This document shows positions 2,190 through 59,370 of a stretch of DNA of 64,000 bases, one piece after another. Each line of letters opens with the position of its first letter. Position 1 is the stretch's first letter. A program made the translations under genes and the position numbers. The notes under the pieces were generated by a model, which was given only the letters and a program-made list of their open reading frames with translations, did not search any database and had not been told where the DNA came from. Source of the stretch: Tubulanus polymorphus (taxonomy: Eukaryota; Animalia; Nemertea); contig NC_134035.1 of the NCBI RefSeq assembly GCF_964204645.1, positions 3,534,001-3,598,000 on the forward strand. Reading direction: 5' to 3'.

Positions 2190-2347
2190 GAGAAAGATGA
2201 AGCGCGAAATGTTTCGTTTAAGCTCATGATTTATCGGTTCGACGTTTTCCCGAGTTTTCCCGAAGACGACTATCATGCTATGTAGCCGAAACGTCGAATC
2301 GATAAATCATTAGCTTTAAGGAAACTTTTCTTACTTCACCATTCTCG
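2190..2347. repeat. ~60-bp imperfect inverted repeat (hairpin) with a degenerate hammerhead-like motif on the + strand
   Basis: cgagaaagatgaag...aagctcatgatttatcggttcgacgttt pairs with aaacgtcgaatcgataaatcattagcttt...cttcaccattctcg; internal CCGAAGA-C-GACTA..TAGCC-GAAACGTC. Confidence 0.7.
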
Positions 2348-2851: not shown

Positions 2852-2954
2852 CTACATATTGCAGCAGGATTTCTTATCCGATTTTTCCAGACTCGACTGG
2901 CCTAATTGCATACCGGCACTTTGGACTTCTATATCTTCGTTTGTGCGTAAAATC
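2852..2954 (-). CDS. RASEF: RASEF last coding exon (hypervariable tail and CCNM prenylation motif, TAG stop)
   Basis: ttgcag|G acceptor. Reads (R)[33 protein letters not shown]. Phase 2 matches the previous exon. Confidence 0.9.
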
Positions 2955-5900
2955 CTGCAATTTAAAAAACGAAATTAGACGCATTAACGAGGCCTCGTTC
3001 GACGCGAATACTGTAAAGAGGACGTTCATATGTAGAGAATCCCATAATGAAAATAACAAGAAATAATACAAGTCAAGAAATAGTTCCCGTGAGCAACGTT
3101 TCGACTATATTCTAATAGTCATCTTCGGGAATACTGTATTCCTTGAGCAAGTGTAGTTTATTCAACGTTTCGGCTATATTCTAACAGTCATCTTCAGGAA
3201 TACTGTATTCCTTGAGCTAGTAGTTTATTCAACATTTCCACTATATTCTAATAGTCATCTTCAGGAATACTGTATTCCTTGAGCTAGTAGTTTATTCAAC
3301 GTTTCGACTATATTCTAATAGTCATCTTCAGGAATACTGTATTCCTTGAGCTAGTAGTTTATTCAACGTTTCGACTCTATTCTAATAGTCATCTTCGGGA
3401 ATACTGTATTCTTTGTGCTAGTAGTTTATTCAACGTTTCGACTCTATTCTAATAGTCATCTTCAGGAATACTGTATTCCTTGAGCTAGTAGTTTATTCAA
3501 CGTTTCGACTCTATTCTAATAGTCATCTTCGGGAATACTGTATTCCTTGAGCTAGTAGTTTATTCAACGTTTCGACTCTATTCTAATAGTCATCTTCGGG
3601 AATACTGTATTCCTTGTGCTAGTAGTTTATTCAACGTTTCGACTCTATTCTAATAGTCATCTTCAGGAATACTGTATTCCTTGAGCTAGTAGTTTATTCA
3701 ACGTTTCGACTCTATTCTAATAGTCATCTTCGGGAATACTGTATTCCTTGTGCTAGTAGTTTATTCAACGTTTCGACTCTATTCTAATAGTCATCTTCGG
3801 GAATACTGTATTCCTTGTGCTAGTAGTTTATTCAACGTTTCGACTATATCCTGATAGTCATCTTCAGGAATACTGTATTCCGTATTCCTTGAGCTAGTGT
3901 TTATTTAACGTGGTAGCCAATTCTGATATGACTGCTAGTATAATTGCAAAAAGTTTTAATTTTGAGAGTTAAGAAGCACCTTAAAGAAAATAGAAGGGGG
4001 GAGGAAAAATATCTTACCTCGCTAATTCGGTGACGCATTCTAAAACATTCTCCCCGTCTTTGGCACTGGTTTCGATAAAGAGGGCGTCGTATGTCTGAGA
4101 CGAGAAAAAAAAATAACGAATCAGATTATCTTTACTAAACTGCTTAATACGAGTACCATATTCGAAACTGTGTAATGAAGTATATAGCTACCTTGGCAAT
4201 TCGTTCACCGTCTTCGTATTTCACCGTTCGTCGCCCGTCGGCTTCGTATTCCGTCCTCAAATCCGTCTTATTACCCACCATCATTATAGGTATCTTCTTC
4301 TGCGATCCCTCCTATGTAAAGCAAACGCCGGGTGAGTTAACGCAGTGTACGCGTATTCATAGGTATGATCATGGACTCTAAAACAATTCGTTTCAGAGTC
4401 CATCGTTTTAGAGTCCATGGTATAATACTTTCTGACGAACTGATAATTTTCTAGCAATTATTTTCTAATCAATTGCACATGCGAGTCAATACAACGTGAC
4501 AAGTAGTACTGATACATGTTAACTAGTTTATTAGACGCACGAGTTTTCGCTACTATTGTATCGTAGATTCATCTCCCATTCACCTGGTGAAGCTATTATA
4601 CTCTGGTAGCGCAAGCTCTTGCATCTGATAAACAAGTTAACCGTTAAAGCGCTGTTCTACACCCGGTTAACACGGCTCCTCTACTAATCTTCTCATCGTG
4701 TCTAATACTAGATTCAAGAATGCTTCGAATACGAACGAAATTTCGATACAATTTTTCCATATCTCGTACGGGCTTTCTTTCCATATTTTTCCCCATTTTC
4801 CACGACGACAAAAACGAACAAAAAACCGTGCAGTCGGTGCAGAAAGATGTTAGTGAATAGATTCAAGGTATTATTCTACTAATCTAATTATCATGCAAGC
4901 GACCAGAGGACGCCTAAATCCATGCTATGATGCAATATAGTCGTATACAAAGATGTTTATATAGACGTGACGTATACATATATGATAGGTGTGATAGGTT
5001 TTTTTAAACCGGATACCCAGTGAGATGAAACCAATTTATATCTGGTCGTACAAATTGGCACTTGTGATTGCTAACACAGCAGACAGTATAAGACGTGAAG
5101 TGTTTGTATATGGATGTATATACACCTACCACTATTCTAATTATGACGGCCAGTACTTGCGAGTAATTTGCGATTCGTTCCCTTGGCGGCCACTGTATAC
5201 GATGTATTTATAGACCCCGGGGGTCAGAGTAGACTGGTTTTAACTTTTCGGTCGCTGGAGAAGCACATCTAATGATGGCTTCTCTACTGAGAGACCGAAA
5301 CATTGTTTCTATGAATTCTCTGATTCAAATGCCAAATTTGTGAGGTTTTTTGGAGCAAATAAGAGGTTATTCTTTTACTAAACGCCTATTTTCATATGCG
5401 TCACATCGACCGTCAACTGGCCGTCAATTGCGACTCCAGTTATAGCCATAGCCCAACGCACATGATGCGTGATCAATACGTCATAGTGACGTCACGCATT
5501 GTCTCTATATATCGGAGTTAATTTCGGGGCTCGAACACCGGGTACTGACCGTCAAAATGCTGCCACCGTACCGAGAGTAGCGGAGCATGTATTAATAGTT
5601 GTCTAACCTGACTCACCTCCACGGCTTCCACCCATTCTCGCACGTTTATGAACGAACGTTCGTAGGTGACGTCATAAAGCAGCAGCACCCCGTCGGCGCG
5701 TCGGAAATACGATTTGGCGATGCTGCGGAATCGTTCCTGACCGGCAGTGTCCCATAACTGCAACGCGATCACTCTATTGTCGACTTGGAGCGTTTTCGTT
5801 TGGAAGTCAACGCCTGAAAACGAACGGAGACAAGAGAAATTGAGAACTTGTTGCCGTGAAGTTAAGCTGACATTGACCAAGTACAATTGATTACCCAGGC

Positions 5901-33333: not shown

Positions 33334-33562
33334 ATTCTAATTGTCATCTTCGGGAATACTGTATTCCTTGTGTTAGTAGTTTATTCAACGTTTCGACGAT
33401 ATTCTAAAAGTCATCTTCGGGAATACTGTATTCCTTGAGCTAGTAGTTTATTCAACGTTTCGACTATATTCCAAAAGTCATCTTCGGGAATACTGTATTC
33501 CCTCAGCTAGTGTAGTTTATTCAACGTTTCGGCTATATCCTAATAGTCATCGTCGGTGATAC
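33334..33562 (-). repeat. Second array of the 67-bp hammerhead-motif repeat (~3.5 units, CCGAAGA-type cores)
   Basis: Same unit as 3094..3911; flanked by 17/20-identical direct repeats at 33310..33329 and 33563..33582. Confidence 0.92.
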
Positions 33563-36339
33563 TGAAACTCGAATCATGAGTCGGTTTCGTGTGTGCGGGA
33601 AAATTCTACGAGATGTATTAAGAGAGAGACGAGATGTGAGCCGGTCCCTGTCAGGTTGAAATGCATTATTCATTAAACACGAGCATAATTAATATGCGCT
33701 GCATTTAATAGGTTGTATTAGACAAATTGCACATTTAAACCCCGCACCCGACGTAATTGTTTTAATTGGGCTGATTTATGCAGTGGCTTGCTAGTGGCGC
33801 TGAGTGTATGTTGTGCCAGTCGGCGGCGGGCGGCGGTGCGCACAGCGGCGGCGGCGGCCTACGCTAGTAAGAAACAATTTTCATTCAGTCGAAATGAAGC
33901 CCCGACCAAACGAAAATGAATTATGTTATGCACGTTTGGCGAGAACGTAATTACGGTAATTATTCATCGCGCGCGAATCATGTTCGGACGCTCGGAGCTT
34001 CTTCTTCCACACGAACGTCATACGGATATAGGGCGCGGTACCACGTAAAAACCCGATTCGCTATGGCTGCCTCCAGGCTATCAGCGCACCGCACATACCG
34101 TCCACGCTTACGTGATGGCGAAAGTCGCCCGTGACCTTTTCAAATCAGTTAGCCGTCTGCGCTTGACGGCCAATGTGACGTCAACTGAATACCGGTGACA
34201 ATTGGTGAAACTCTATTCCGTATTGTAACGACATATAAAACAAGAAAACTAACTTGTAAGTGTATTGACGCTTTGAACAACAACAAACATATTGATTAAT
34301 ACTGAAAAAAAGATAATATTGATTATATACACATGTAATACCGAGGATCAATAAAATTATTTTAGATTTGAATATATCAATATTGAATTGAATTGACCGG
34401 CAACCAGTCTAACTCCGATGTATGAGATTGATGACGTAGCATTCGTTCAGTCATTCAACACGAACGTTAAATCGCGGCTTTTGAGTCTAAGACCATCCTA
34501 GTTACGTAGCCAATCTGATGAATTATGACCGGTCTTACGATTTTAGACTACTTCGGACATAAATCGCGGGACTTAACCATCGCTTTTAGGTTGTGTAACG
34601 TAAATCCCTTATCGTCACTAATATCAATCATTTGCCGATCGATACGGTGTAGCCAAGTAGACATGTAAACTGTTATCCTTTTGCTTACTTCAGTCACATT
34701 CGATTCATCGTATGACTTTTTTACTGAATAAAGTTTTGAAAACATTCTTAGTAAAAGTACGCGGTTGCAATGGGCCTTTATTCGTTTTATGTGCGCGATC
34801 ATAGTAAACAACAACTTAGGACAGATTTTTTTGTTGATCGGCCGCACGGAAAATTCTTTTTGCGACACCCCTCGAGGTGGAGCATATTATGCCGACGAAT
34901 CACTTATCCAGTGGCACCGTCTGGTGGGCTCAATCCTCTCCATGAGCTCTGTCTAGCGGGACAAATTCAATTCAAATTCAGTTCAATTCAATACAATACA
35001 GTTAATACTTTATTGCTTTCTCGAAACATTACATCAGTTTTCGCACTCCTCGTGGCTGATATTTTATCCGAATATAATAAACCCGGAACAAAAACCTTTG
35101 AACCGTTTGATCTTCGTTGAGGCATTAAATTTCTTTCCTAGTAATTCTATTTTAACCTAGTATATTTCTACATTTTAGTCGTCGAATGAACAATAACCAG
35201 TGTATCCTTTCAGTGATAAATTCTATCATATGAAATTCAATTGTGGGACATTGATATTTCTCCATGTCTACCGCAGCTATAATTATTGGAAATCTTAGTC
35301 CATTTATTAACACCTTGATGGTCTGAAGAGAGCGTTCGAATTTGATTTTAATTTTCAAATAATGATATTCGTTTTTTATCTTTTAAGCTGCTCATCTATG
35401 CTGGTTCTATTAAAACCTATATCAGGTATGTACTTCCAAAACTGTTCTGCGCCACCGTCCTCAGCAAAAGCTGAAATCCATATTCGAGTCAATTTATTTT
35501 TAAAGCTTTTTGTGTAAACTTCAAGAACGGACAATAATTGGTTGCGTATGGATCGTTTAACTTTCCATTCAAAACATTTTTTTCGTACAATATCGTGCAT
35601 ATAGAACTCTATAACTTCTCAAGGCGTCGCAGGATATTTCTTCTAGAAATTGACCTCGTTAGTTTTTGTGTCATCACGTCTAGGACTCATCTTGTTTCTT
35701 ATAACCTTCGCCGTCTCGTACTGTGTATATTTTGCCCTATAAATCTTTATTGGAAGTTTGTACTAGATATCCCCTTCAATAAACAAAACCATCGAATGAT
35801 ACCCGCACAGATGTTCCCAATCTAAAGACAGCTGAACCAAGCATAATGCGACACCGATCGGTTTCGTGCATTCCGACAGCGACTAGAACAAATCGCCTCC
35901 GGCCTCGTGAAGCAACTTCGGTTTAACACCGCTGTTTAGTCAGCAAGACGTTAGTCATGTAAAATTTGTCAACCGCGTGCGGAAATTCGACTAACGTCAA
36001 GCGACCTGCTGCCAATCTTTTATCGGATGCATCTCGTGTTGTTTTAAGTTCGTGCGTAGAACCCTATACGTATTCACCACTCATTTACCCGATGAAGCTA
36101 CTGTTCATCAGTAGCGAAAGTTCATATCTTAAAATGAAACTAGTTAACCTATAAAGTACTGCCTCTCTACGTTTTACTGATTCGTATCCATAATGAGAAT
36201 AATAATAATAATAACTAATAAATGATGATAATAATATTAATAAATAATAATGATAATAAAAGTGATAATATATTTTCGTACATTTTCGTACAGTGCGGTT
36301 AAACAAGTTTAGAAATCTGTTATCAGATTCGGGAGTGCA

Positions 36340-36444: not shown

Positions 36445-39044
36445 TGAATAATATTACGTATGCGAATCTTCTACAGATCGAGTTCGATGGTGGTTGAATT
36501 CAGTAATGCCATAGTAAATAGAAAATATTAAGCCTACGGACAAATATCGTCATTTTTAGGCTAAAAAAATTGATACAAACAAGGTATCATTTTTGTTTAG
36601 CCTTATCTTCAAAACCTAAGAGATAATACTTGAAATTAGACTTTAGAATGCTCCATATGAAATCAAGGACAGATTGTTGCGATGAAAATAGCGAAGCTGT
36701 AAAACGACCAAAAAGGAGAACATAGCTAACAATACTTCAACTGGATAGCGCGGAATCCGCGCGTTTATCCTAATAGGGGCGGCTCCGAGAATATGAAAAT
36801 CACGGCATCTCTATCTAGCTAGGATTTCTAACGCTACGGCCCGAGATGATATTCTTCTTTCACGCGCGCGTCTATCGAATATCAATTACATTTTCAAAAA
36901 GATAAATTGAGAAAAACTCAGACAAGGCGATTAGGTAGAGGCGATCACCGATTCCGTTGTACGACTCTCGTCGATAATTTAAAAATGTCGTCGCCCGGCG
37001 GGTCGTCTATTCGACAGGCTGTGCGTATATACCTATGATAAAGCACCAGTTGACTCGATTTATCATATCTGTCGGTGGTGTTTCGCCCACGGCTAATTAA
37101 AAAGGCGACGACCACCAAGATTCTAGGAGGACAGTGCTGAGATTTCGTTTTCGGCTGTTTTTCACAAACATCCTCGAAACGCTTCGGAACACATTCTAAC
37201 ACTGGCGCGTTTAGGTCGTCTCGTCGAGTGTGGTCAATAGCAATCTCCATACATATTGTTGCTACCGATACCTTTCAATCCCATTTTCCGTTGTCTCGTC
37301 GTGACGCAATTATATACATTACCGGATGGCAGACAATAAAGATGAAAAATAGTCGAAAAACCTTTTAAAATGATCATACTTAAAAGCCTTTTAAAATGAT
37401 GATACTTTTATTATGAAGTGGACTAATAACAATATCGATTACATATACATATATACATACATAAAACCCGGGTTTTTAGTATGGTTAAGTAATTGATGGT
37501 CTTACATTACGTTGAATATTTTTCTATATATTTCCCTTAACCTTTTGTCATTTTGATGTATAGATAACGCGGTAAAGATAGAATATTTGGCTTGAGTATT
37601 GGTATTAATGATATCTAAAAAAAATTCGGTAGTTAAATTCGCTAGATAGATCTTGTCTATTTTTGCGCATCACGTAGAGCTTCCGTCTGCTGGTTCCACA
37701 GTTCCGAGTTAAAATTCATCTCATGGTGAACTCGAACTCATAACTGCGGAACCGGGTTGTGATGTATCAGATGTATTCATGTGGATATTTAGAAACGAAC
37801 ACGTATCCAAGTTGGTCACGCTTATCCTACGCTTAAGACCAATCCTCAGCGATTCGGCCAATACTGACGTATGGTAGCTTCACACCAGGGTAAATAAGTC
37901 TCATTTCCTGATGAAGCTGCTACACATTAGTATTTCATTGTCACCTTGAGTTTGTCAATTTTGAGTTAAGGTAAGATTATTCAACGGCCCTAATATGGCG
38001 AATAGATATTATGTAATATTATATTATTTCTAAGAAATCACGTACATTTGGTAATATCAAGGTAACCGTTATAATATTCTCAATATAGCGCACGTACACG
38101 ATGAATCAGTGTTGTTGAATAATCTTAACTTAACCTTTACTTCATCGACAAACTCGAGTTCGGGATAGTAATGGCAATCCAATCTCGTGAGTGCAGTTTG
38201 GTAAAATAACGATCGAAATTAACGATGAAAAAACACAATGAATTTTTGAGTGGCGGCAAATTGAATATTAAATTTCACAATATGGAGCACGTGCACAATA
38301 AATACGTCTGGGCCGTTGAATAATCGTAACCTTAACCAACTCAAGGTTACAATGATAGTAATGGCAATCATGGGTGCAGTGGAATAGTAACAATCGAAAT
38401 CAAAAAAAGAGAAAAAAAAACCATAATCGCGATATTTTGATTTGGTGCCAAATGAGTAAGTAGTTGTAAGTTCAGTCTCTGAATTGACTGAAAATATGAC
38501 CTAGGAACGCTCCCCCTGTTATACTCCAGATACTTTCATTAATCAGCATCGCTCGTCTTCGTCGATGGAGTTTAATTAATTGGAAATTAACTCGGTCTTC
38601 TAAAGTTCAATCCAGCTCGCAGCAGCGGCTCGTGGTTCCTGTAATTCATTTTATGAATTGCGCATATCATTCGGTCGCGCTGAATCGTGTAATTTCGACA
38701 ACGCGTGGGTGACACCTATGACAGATATGATTTAGCGTCTCGGATTCGACGATAATTTCGTTCGCCATTTCGGCATTCGGTAAATACGAGTGTAATATTG
38801 AAATTATGGGTTTCCGATTACGAAGAGGGAAAAGCGAGAAAACTGCGCTAACGTTTGGAATACAAGTATATATGAACCTTTTCATCGCATTCGATACCTT
38901 TGATTTAACCTTATGAAAAAGAACGATAAAATCGTTAGACACCTCGTTGTTATCGCGATTGATAAAATACTATGGATCCGTGTTGAAGCGATGTGGAGAG
39001 AATTCCATAATAATGACGAAAAAACAGTCCGAAAATGTAACTGA

Positions 39045-39440
39045 AGCTAGTAGTTTATTCAACGTTTCGAATATATTCTAACAGTCATCTTCAGGAATAC
39101 TGTATTCCTTGAGCTAGTGTAGTTTATTCATCATTTCGACCATATTCTAATAGTCATCTTCAGGAATACTGTATTCCTTGAGCTGGTAATTCATTCAACG
39201 TTTCGACTATATTCTAAAAGTCATCTTCAGGAATACTGTATTCCTTGAGCTAGTGTAGTTTATTCATCATTTCGACCATATTCTAATAGTCATCTTCAGG
39301 AATACTGTTTTCCTTGAGCTAGTGTAGTTTATTCAACGTTTCGACTATATTCTAACAGTCATCTTCAGGAATACTGTATTCCTTGAGCTAGTAGTTTAGT
39401 CAACATTTCGACTGTATTCTAATCGTCATCTTCGGGAATA
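39045..39440 (-). repeat. Third array of the 67-69-bp hammerhead-motif repeat (6 units, 5 with CUGAAGA)
   Basis: Same unit, same orientation as the other two arrays. Confidence 0.93.
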
Positions 39441-41359
39441 ATTCTCTCTACACCTTGTTGTATTACACCTTCTCGGAGCCACGGCTGATTTTGATTCTTT
39501 TCGACAGACTGGTGATCGCCGCCGCCTCATAAATTATGTTCCTTCGATATATCTGTCGACGCGAGAAAAAGTCGCTCGTCGATACCTTTCACTCGGCTGG
39601 CGGTGCGCTAAATCACACTCGGACACGGCGACCAGTCTTATCCGCTTATCGACTATCTGTTTACCTGCTGGGACTTGTCATCGATCATGACTTATTTCGT
39701 CTGAAAAATTGCCTTGTCGTTCGTTTTTCGAGGCCATTTGCCCTTTCCGTTCCGCCGTGGTCGCGCGAACTTTTCTGATTTTCTGTATCTAACGCGGGAT
39801 GTGTATTACCTACCGGAGACTCCCTTAGAAGAATTTCTGGTTCGACGATGTCCTGAAAAATAAAAAGGTCCGATTATAATTATTAGAATATCAACCACGC
39901 GCTAGCGATAGATTCTTTATATTTGCTGACGTAAATCGGGCGTCAGGCTTTTTAAAGTTTGCTCACTCCGCGTGATCCATTACGAGGTGGATCTATCAAA
40001 CTTACGGTAGCCTTCTGTTGACTCTATTTCAACCAACTGATTTGAAATCCAACGTAATTCGGTATTGGGTGCGTCGGTTTCTTTTTTTCGTTTTAATTTG
40101 CTCGCTACCATATCGTAATATCGATTTCGAGTACAGCAAGTGCATCAGCGATCTTCAATGGGTTGCGGCAAAACCGATCGTAGAATTAGAGAGAGAGAGA
40201 GAGAGTGAGAGTGAGAGAGAGAGGGAAATAGTGAGACATGATACCCGTGCAAGAAAGTCCTTCGGCTTTTCCTATAATGTGTTTGCTAATGATTTCGATG
40301 CATCCAGCGTCCATTAGCGTAAAAATAAACATCAATACGATTAATTATTCAACGCGAAAGTAATTGGGTTGCCAAAAGTCTCAGACATAGAAACGCGCGG
40401 GCATTCGCCGCGGAATTGAATTGGGGACGATACGGATCCCGGCCCCTTGATAACCGCTATAACCGACTGAAAGCAGTGCTTAATTGTCAACCCTGATACA
40501 TCCCACGACCGCTAGTCAATTTTCCAGTAAATCAGCCGCGGCGATAGTTCCTTTGACATCATTTAACGCCCTTTCTTTATGGTATAGAGGAAAGGTGTTG
40601 ATGAATGTAGAAATAACCTATTCATAGAAATGTTTTTTTTCAAGTCAGATCGGACGTTAAAAACTACTTATTTTCCCGCTGTTGGTTCTTTCACTATCAG
40701 TAGACCTCTTTCTCTATGGGCCGGTTCCATATAGTCGGTTCCTAAACTGCGAACATGGTCTTAGATCTTAGACTGGTCTTAAGTTGTTAGCTTGGTTATG
40801 GAGATAAGATGGTCTTAAGATCTGACAACGGAACAATGTTTTTGATATATAAAAGAGGATCCGAAATGTTCGCCATGGCAATTTTGTTAACTACTGACAT
40901 CCAGAAGAATATTTTGAAGTCTTTTAACACGAAACCAATTTTTGTCCAATTAAGAAAGGTATCAATGCTTTTGAATTCATGTCATTCGCCGATATCATTC
41001 AATTCAATTAGATATAGTTTATTTCTCAATTTAAAGTAAATATAATCAGTACAGATATTAAAGTATATTCAATTACGATTATACAGTGACAAGATGGCTT
41101 TGAAGATGCAGCATAAATACAGACATTTACCTTCACCTACCAATCCAGATATACATGTAAACATACGTACATATTCGTATTAACGATTAGATTTCACACC
41201 TGTTTGTCCTATCTATATATTGATAAACCGTATTCGAATTTCTTCGCATTTGAAATTGTTTGCAAGGAATATAAGCTCCATCTATTTAAGAAATATGCAG
41301 GGAGGTAACGTTGCCTTATTTGGCTGTAAAAGTCGGACTCGAAGAAAACAATCATTCGA

Positions 41360-59081: not shown

Positions 59082-59370
59082 TTTGAAAATGGCTTAAGAA
59101 TCGAGTCTAAACGTCGCGACTCCCTTAGAATTGATCCCAGTTAGTTCTGAAAATGGCTCATATAGAAATGAGTCTAAACGTCACTGCTCTCTTAGTTTTG
59201 GAAATGTCTCATAGAATAGAGTCTAAACGTCACTGCTCTCTTAGTTTTGAAAAAAGGCTTATAGAATTGAATCTTAAATTCACCACTCTCTTAGTTTTGA
59301 AGATGTCTTATAGAATAGAGTCTAAAGGTCACTGCTCTCTTGGTTTTGAAAATGTCTCATAGAATTGAAT
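59082..59370. repeat. ~49-50-bp minisatellite, ~5.5 units
   Basis: tttgaaaatggctcatagaatagagtctaaacgtcactgctctcttagt-like units (atagaa at 59162, 59211, 59261, 59310). Confidence 0.9.

Follow-up and report, generated by a model that had tools for sequence, protein, structure and literature searches.

The window analysed here, a stretch of 64,000 nucleotides from the nemertean Tubulanus polymorphus (NCBI RefSeq assembly GCF_964204645.1, contig NC_134035.1, positions 3,534,001 to 3,598,000), carries on its minus strand a gene for an EF-hand/Rab protein, whose last intron houses a tandem array of short units, each with the motif of a minimal hammerhead ribozyme (min-HHR). All coordinates below are positions in the window. 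Since exons located on the same strand match the Ras family (82.4 bits) as well as several EF-hand families, the host gene, which combines EF-hands with a Rab GTPase, appears to be of the RASEF type; the exons were searched one by one, unjoined, and the exon junction was read by eye. The last intron (2955..4017, minus strand) starts with GT at positions 4017-4016 and ends with AG at 2956-2955, and the coding part of the last exon (2852..2954, minus strand) ends with KSCCNM and a stop codon (2854-2852). Direct reading thus agrees with an earlier note on this DNA, which had placed the last intron and the CCNM-encoding final exon in this way.

The array occupies positions 3094..3911 on the minus strand, i.e., in sense orientation relative to the host gene, and comprises 12 units, all 67 bp long except for unit 11 (69 bp), and a 5′ partial unit, through which it reaches ~3911. 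Tandem Repeats Finder reports a period of 67, 11.7 copies and 95% matches for positions 3094-3881. Units are numbered here from the minus-strand 5′ end; the earlier note counted them from the plus strand. Each unit contains a min-HHR motif of the type found in Penelope-like elements (PLEs), followed by a 24-nt spacer. On the minus strand, the order is the 5′ strand of stem I (UAUUC), the first core box (CUGAAGA or CCGAAGA, positions C3 to A9), an unpaired U, stem II (GACUAU and AUAGUC on both sides of a 6-nt loop), GAAA, CG, UU (U16.1 and U17, which complete the GUU site), the 3′ strand of stem I (GAAUA) and the spacer. Stem I is 5 bp long, and stem II is paired over 4-6 bp, depending on the unit. 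The earlier note had described the array as 12 minimal hammerheads with a palindrome in place of stem III, in sense orientation in the last intron; Tandem Repeats Finder and unit-by-unit reading confirmed this, the motifs being of the minimal type I with no closed stem III, and the layout it gave is present in every unit.

The core boxes are intact in five of the 12 units (1, 4, 7, 9 and 11), and an invariant position is lost in the remaining seven. Every conserved box and a stem II of 6/6 pairs are found in unit 1 (3809..3875) and unit 9 (3273..3339), which score 52.5 and 52.7 bits with the covariance model described below. Cleavage is predicted between positions 3834 and 3833 in unit 1 and between 3298 and 3297 in unit 9, the latter being the very position named earlier. 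Units 4 (3608..3674) and 7 (3407..3473) have intact boxes and a single A.G mismatch in stem II, and unit 11 (3137..3205) has intact boxes and a stem II of 5/6 pairs (all on the minus strand). The four units that had been listed as intact in core and stem II (4, 6, 9 and 12 in the plus-strand count, here 9, 7, 4 and 1) all keep their boxes, but only two of them, 9 and 1, have a perfect stem II, and the list lacked unit 11 (its unit 2), which also retains every box. Among defective units, 2, 3, 5, 6, 8 and 12 carry a U4-to-C change (CCGAAGA), and unit 10 carries C11.1-to-G together with C15.2-to-U. The palindrome ACGU, through which two copies could jointly form helix III, is present in 11 of the 12 units, the unpaired U between positions 9 and 10.1 in all 12, and the G10.1-C11.1 pair in 11. 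The consensus of 234 array units collected genome-wide contains every core box.

Hammerhead class of the motif

The hammerhead families of Rfam gave no match at the gathering threshold in the whole window and none at E-values up to 10 in positions 2900-4100. This result, the equal conservation of all columns of the unit, and inverted flanks that at first hinted at a miniature inverted-repeat transposable element (MITE) would fit the view that the likeness to a hammerhead arose by chance in an ordinary satellite or a DNA-transposon repeat. Since the Rfam models expect a closed helix III, absent here, their silence is no argument against the motif and is uninformative wherever helix III is lacking. 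Conservation and covariation within the family of 67-bp units are uninformative as well, because nearly every column is 91-100% conserved, with the exception of two polymorphic stem-II/loop columns.

The motif is retained in PLE families whose proteins are 68-72% and 59% identical, where it is located 229-338 nt after the open reading frame (ORF). CUGANGA, U, G...C, GAAA, CG and UU are invariant between families, and the helices are rebuilt: stem II and stem I are, respectively, GACUAU/AUAGUC and UAUUC/GAAUA in family A, the parent of the 67-nt unit, GGCUAA/UUAGCC and CGC/GCG in family B (68-72%), and GGCUGUU/AACAGCC and CCAC/GUGG in family C (59%). To test for covariation, eight instances of the motif from five families were aligned without gaps; partners slid by 1-3 columns and 500 shuffles served as controls. 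The cells were paired in 85.7% of cases versus 29-49% in the slid controls, both-sided changes were found in 10 of the 14 stem pairs, and both stems covary in the autonomous families. The observed pairing or covariation was reached in none of the 500 shuffles. Alignment columns 19 and 36 (the unpaired-U/G-C test) are invariant across families. Covariation of stems I and II, to which the earlier note had pointed as a check, is present across PLE families, and the array units collected genome-wide show no compensatory changes.

A descriptor of the motif that required N7 = U and thereby left out family A retrieved 1,390 sites in the genome versus 15 for the control, the same pattern read backwards, a 90-fold enrichment. 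The sites include several further families with distinct stem II sequences, and the palindromic dinucleotide in other families of the genome is CG, GC or UA. The Rfam hammerhead models miss the whole min-HHR class, with more than 1,300 sites in other families of this genome. At least five further min-HHR families were noticed (e.g., G000:C1:767967-768001 and C1:5120313-5120346) with GC or UA as the palindrome, and one of them has an unpaired A replacing U, plus C17. Pairs of min-HHRs on opposite strands, ~40-60 nt apart, are frequent, which fits inverted-copy junctions of PLE insertions.

A covariance model built from the non-A PLE families only was run on both strands of the window with filters off. 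It recovered all 12 intron units (41-53 bits, E-values from 1e-12 to 2e-9), with units 9 and 1 at the top. The searches with hammerhead models that had been proposed earlier are thus null for Rfam, but positive for every unit with this model. The covariation across PLE families, the E-value of 1e-12 from an independent model and the 90-fold enrichment of the descriptor all argue against a chance likeness, as do the descent of the unit and the structure of its insertions (see below); this view retains a negligible probability and can be considered already refuted.

As judged from its sequence, the motif is a member of the min-HHR class of PLEs, whose sequence-level features it shares in full. 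The min-HHRs of PLEs entered the literature in 2014; the metazoan examples (Cervera & de la Pena 2014, PMC4209133) resemble the intron motif in their boxes, CUGANGA and GAAA, in the absence of helix III and loop 3, in a palindromic 15.2-16.2, in a G10.1-C11.1 pair and in the lengths of their helices, with 6-7 bp in the long helix II and 4-5 bp in the short helix I. They likewise lie in the terminal repeat region of an element coding for reverse transcriptase (RT) and GIY-YIG and form many families per genome with compensatory changes. Three of these hallmarks, G10.1-C11.1, the palindromic 15.2-16.2 and the families with compensatory changes, are listed by these authors as having emerged independently of their own search descriptor (PMC4209133), and the intron motif agrees with each of them. 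In contrast to the published examples, the intron motif is excised from its element and amplified into tandem arrays of 67-69 bp, and the palindromic junction of the array unit competes with helix I. The amniote intronic hammerheads HH9 and HH10 are also sense motifs inside an intron of a protein-coding gene; as cited in PMC7229834 (de la Pena & Garcia-Robles 2010), they are single, canonical, ultraconserved and recognised by Rfam, whereas the intron array is a transposon fragment present in many copies, which is decaying and gives no match in Rfam. Inspection ruled out an alternative hammerhead in which stem I would be formed by the stronger helix, GUAUUCC/GGAAUAC: it would place G or A-A at 17/16.1 and consume C3.

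The parent Penelope-like element

Units were collected genome-wide by nhmmer. A two-unit query yielded 154 scored matches from 872 candidates, distributed over many contigs of the 268-Mb assembly. In 23 arrays compared, the 5′ ends are located at varied unit phases and have unrelated flanks, and the 3′ side runs into a common sequence of ~44 nt that ends with GGGATTCTCT; in several arrays, a further tail of ~40 nt follows. An inverted 5′-truncated copy adjoins some of the arrays. A whole element is found at locus L021, where a 13-bp direct duplication of the target accompanies an inverted 5′-truncated copy without a tail, four units, and the 3′ end with its tail. Target-site duplications could be read only at arrays or short elements of the young subfamily, such as L021, and are 11 and 13 bp long in the two cases read.

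A search with the tail-bearing 3′ end alone gave 1059 candidates at 99-100% identity. The hammerhead motif is always found 5′ of this end, with AUUAUUC/GAAAUAA as stem I. Longer copies extend into an ORF with a GIY-YIG domain and are arranged in head-to-tail tandems with a spacing of 2.86 kb. The full PLE unit contains an 802-aa ORF with RVT_1 (5.8e-10) and GIY-YIG (9.2e-6) matches, the hammerhead lies ~316 nt past its stop codon, and the tail reads on into the ORF that follows; its 40 nt are at the same time the opening bases of that ORF. Frames are open in many copies of the parent family, which is active-looking in this genome. Dozens of copies of the parent PLE, such as that at locus L076 (G000:C2:15724500-15734499, minus strand), are 98-100% identical, many of them with uninterrupted 833-aa frames, and the family is very young.

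PLE insertions are known to be truncated at the 5′ end, to form partial tandems and to come with a truncated copy in inverted orientation and a 30-40 nt tail at one end (PMC8557442); this signature has been explained mechanistically, and a hammerhead has been placed near the PLE 3′ end (PMC11167929). Resident PLE copies display 5′ truncation, partial tandems, the inverted truncated copy, the tail and the target duplication described in PMC8557442. With an ORF for RT that has GIY-YIG at its C-terminal end, head-to-tail partial tandems of the pseudo-LTR (long terminal repeat) type, 5′ truncation, an inverted 5′-truncated copy, a 30-40 nt tail and a hammerhead near the 3′ end, these copies resemble canonical endonuclease-positive (EN+) PLEs (Craig et al. 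2021, PMC8557442; Mob DNA 2024, PMC11167929), and by its coding sequence and insertions the parent is one of them. A MITE or foldback DNA transposon, which the inverted flanks had brought to mind, was ruled out: the inverted copy has no tail, the target duplications (11 and 13 bp) are long and variable, a PLE signature (PMC8557442) rather than that of terminal inverted repeats, and the parent encodes RT and GIY-YIG. The descent of the unit from the hammerhead-bearing 3′ region of such an element also speaks against a chance likeness in an ordinary satellite.

The copy in the intron differs from canonical EN+ PLEs in being non-coding, without the RT/GIY-YIG ORF, and in consisting of the hammerhead segment repeated 12 times and a diverged 3′ end. 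Downstream of the last unit lies the diverged 3′ terminal region of the element (3034..3093, minus strand), ending with TTTTCATTATGGGATTCTCT; the same sequence is found after independent arrays and in the autonomous PLE. The next segment (2993..3033, minus strand) is probably what is left of the PLE tail of 30-40 nt, with weak similarity and an uncertain boundary. Together, about 880-920 nt of the 1063-nt intron is PLE-derived. The kinship with PLEs, which the earlier note had raised as an analogy, thus proves to be one of descent, the unit being a piece of the 3′ region of a resident PLE.

We consider it very probable that a PLE gave rise to the array as a non-autonomous derivative, which decays as a passenger in the last intron of the RASEF-like gene. 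The 67-nt unit consists of the min-HHR of the PLE 3′ region, ~22 nt past the cleavage site and a short palindromic junction. The array would have been inserted by the RT and endonuclease of a PLE, and selection on the hammerhead would operate in the autonomous families. The PLE origin of hammerhead tandem repeats has been described since 2020 (PMC7229834) and 2026 (10.64898/2026.07.22.740005), and the locus provides a worked example of this process, the birth of a satellite from the hammerhead-bearing end of a Penelope-like retrotransposon. What is specific to the intron array is its very short unit, its intronic sense position and the decay of the local copy. Unusually short tandem units derived from min-HHRs (67-69 bp, and a decayed one of 49 bp, see below) are thereby documented with the PLE 3′ end still attached, and they support the view that animal hammerhead repeats are derived from PLEs and non-autonomous.

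Metazoan non-LTR retrozymes (Cervera & de la Pena 2020, PMC7229834; Li et al. 2026, 10.64898/2026.07.22.740005) are similarly dispersed, non-coding hammerhead tandem repeats that are derived from PLEs or mobilised by them. Like them, the array is made of non-coding tandem repeats with a type I hammerhead in each. Unlike them, it has neither a canonical hammerhead whose loops make contact nor a monomer in the range of 150-450 nt: retrozymes have monomers of 150-450 bp, canonical type I hammerheads with contacts between loops 1 and 2, efficient cleavage and circular RNAs that accumulate, while the array has a 67-bp unit, a minimal hammerhead and the PLE 3′ terminus with a tail. One may nevertheless ask whether the arrays are ultra-small retrozymes: their transcripts would self-cleave into RNAs of 67 nt, which would close into circles and serve the PLE RT as rolling-circle templates, so that arrays arise and spread. 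The unit length does equal the distance between successive cleavage sites, the arrays are numerous and retroelement-borne, the 49-bp satellite is also derived from a min-HHR, and rolling-circle copying has been proposed for both PLEs and retrozymes (PMC4209133, PMC7229834). However, the arrays end in a non-repeated PLE 3′ terminus with a tail, for which a 67-nt circle could not serve as a template, and their 5′ ends are found at many unit phases and not at the cleavage site. In addition, private variants show local amplification at the DNA level, and the known retrozymes are 150-450 nt long, with canonical hammerheads stabilised by loop-loop contacts (PMC7229834). We therefore regard the retrozyme route as highly unlikely. 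The most fitting description of the array is that of a min-HHR satellite with short units, for which non-autonomous copies of the PLE are the carriers.

Close to copies of the family-A PLE, at L061:2308-2341, L039:1589-1622 and L045:960-993 (all plus strand), lies a min-HHR of a further family, with the order CUGACGA, U or C, GAUCUC...GAGAUC, GAAA, CG, UC and with CAC/GUG as stem I, which suggests that different PLE families inserted into or next to one another. At L062:3647-4099 (plus strand), upstream of a PLE copy, an ORF gives a weak DNA_pol_B_2 match (E-value 8.9e-5, below the Pfam cut-off) and may be a fragment of a Polinton/Maverick-type element.

Decay of the array and predicted cleavage

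Units 2-7 (3407..3808, minus strand) share with unit 8 (3340-3406) a G in stem II (alignment column 30) that is found in these seven units and in none of the 223 units of 23 other arrays; five of the seven also carry U4-to-C. Because the stem-II variant is private to the intron array, units 2-8 are a local, DNA-level expansion that took place after insertion, mostly from a unit with a dead (U4-to-C) core. Unequal exchange or replication slippage would account for it. Elsewhere, U4-to-C is found in 15 of 223 units, and all boxes are kept in only 62% of the units of other arrays.

The mean divergence from the consensus, calculated for 234 units, is 3.8% at the 15 essential positions versus 2.9% in the spacer, and 2.7% versus 2.9% when the two CpGs are left out. 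Stem changes in these units are all one-sided, and none is compensatory. As can be seen, the core is no better kept than the spacer, and the array copies in general drift neutrally. The two CpGs of the unit, C11.1-G12 and C15.2-G16.2 (columns 34-35 and 39-40), both lie within the ribozyme core; CpG columns diverge about twice as fast as the others (6.8% versus 3.6%), mostly by C-to-T and G-to-A changes, a pattern consistent with methylation-driven decay of array copies.

In the predicted folds of two- and three-unit RNAs, the unit-specific palindromic junction creates a helix, GUAUUCCU...AGGAAUAC, by which every unit is closed and C3 and U4 are base-paired. The place of loop 1 in a dimer would fall to the 24-nt spacer, but this pairs with the 5′ strand of helix I. 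The free minimum free energy (MFE) of a dimer is -29.4 kcal/mol versus -21.9 kcal/mol with the hammerhead helices enforced, and in the ensemble the pairs of stem I have probabilities near 0, as compared to 0.87 for stem II. RNA of the tandem units may thus be mostly held in the unit-closing helix, with stem I hidden, and the five intact units would cleave weakly, as dimers, at most. Published min-HHRs behave modestly as well: one from a schistosome cleaves weakly and only as a dimer or trimer (PMC4209133), and an anole PLE hammerhead cleaves in vitro and is dispensable for insertion, with cleavage-site read ends absent from public RNA-seq data (PMC11167929). Introns of Xenopus are depleted of hammerhead tandem repeats (preprint 10.64898/2026.07.22.740005).

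These data bear on the proposal of the earlier note that the array self-cleaves the host pre-mRNA and so limits prenylated Rab, or that it releases 67-nt RNAs. In this model, adjacent units would dimerise through ACGU and cut the pre-mRNA 140-880 nt before the last acceptor, a selected device that tunes how much full-length, prenylatable Rab is made. The sense orientation, the five intact units whose neighbours supply ACGU, and the established concept of min-HHR dimers (PMC4209133) would all fit such a role. On the other hand, seven of the 12 units are defective, and it is the dead-core variant that was locally expanded; core positions show no excess conservation in arrays; the hammerhead-competent fold lies 7.5 kcal/mol above the MFE, with stem I and C3/U4 sequestered; and the unit is present at hundreds of unrelated loci, so that insertion alone would place an array here. 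The low activity of min-HHRs in vitro (PMC4209133) and the lack of RNA-seq read ends from the anole PLE hammerhead (PMC11167929) point in the same direction. Regulation of the gene by the array is thus unsupported, and a selected cleavage device is extremely unlikely. The insertion would instead be carried along as a passenger, without selection for any role in the host gene. Readings at the level of genes call for caution here, as an intronic ribozyme motif in sense orientation can be neutral and merely carried along.

Several points nevertheless weigh against our reading of the array as a decaying PLE derivative. It is sense-oriented, as are the other two arrays in the window. No target-site duplication of the intron insertion was identified, and the tail of the intron copy has diverged, so that only 5′ truncation and the 3′ terminus are clear among the features of the PLE insertion signature. 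The curated Rfam models do not score the motif, which its missing helix III explains. Equilibrium folding is blind to co-transcriptional folding and to protein chaperones, and the predicted structures are not decisive. Finally, the five fully conserved units adjoin partners with intact ACGU, and some dimeric cleavage is conceivable. A bolder scenario takes the arrays of 67-69 nt for the smallest retrozyme-like elements yet seen, with tandem transcripts cut as dimers, the resulting RNAs of ~67 nt closing into circles that feed the PLE RT, and sense intronic copies occasionally cutting host pre-mRNA; we hold it to be very improbable. If such copies did cut host pre-mRNA, PLE-derived satellites would act directly on gene output.

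Other copies in the window

Two more arrays of the 67-bp family were found on the minus strand. The second, at 33334..33564, was detected by Tandem Repeats Finder and the covariance model and has 3-4 copies, all with U4-to-C. The third, at 39044..39445, has six copies, in which 67- and 69-bp units are mixed, and is followed by the PLE 3′ end and tail. At 2250..2322 on the plus strand, just downstream of the host stop codon and antisense to the gene, the unit is present as a single diverged copy that runs into the PLE 3′ end.

A 49-bp satellite with 4.5 copies is present at 59141-59365 (plus strand). Its unit is a second, independent derivative of a min-HHR with a dead core: CUGAAAA or UUGAAAA is followed by UAAA in place of GAAA, and then by CG and UC. 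The first unit has a 7-bp stem II, GGCUCAU/AUGAGUC, and the satellite gives weak matches to the non-A covariance model (E-values 0.008 and 0.055). A solo decayed min-HHR lies at 5259-5314 (plus strand) in another intron of the host gene, antisense to it; the motif reads CUAAUGA, U, GGCUUCUC...GAGAGACC, GAAA, CA, UU and matches the covariance model with an E-value of 2.9e-4.

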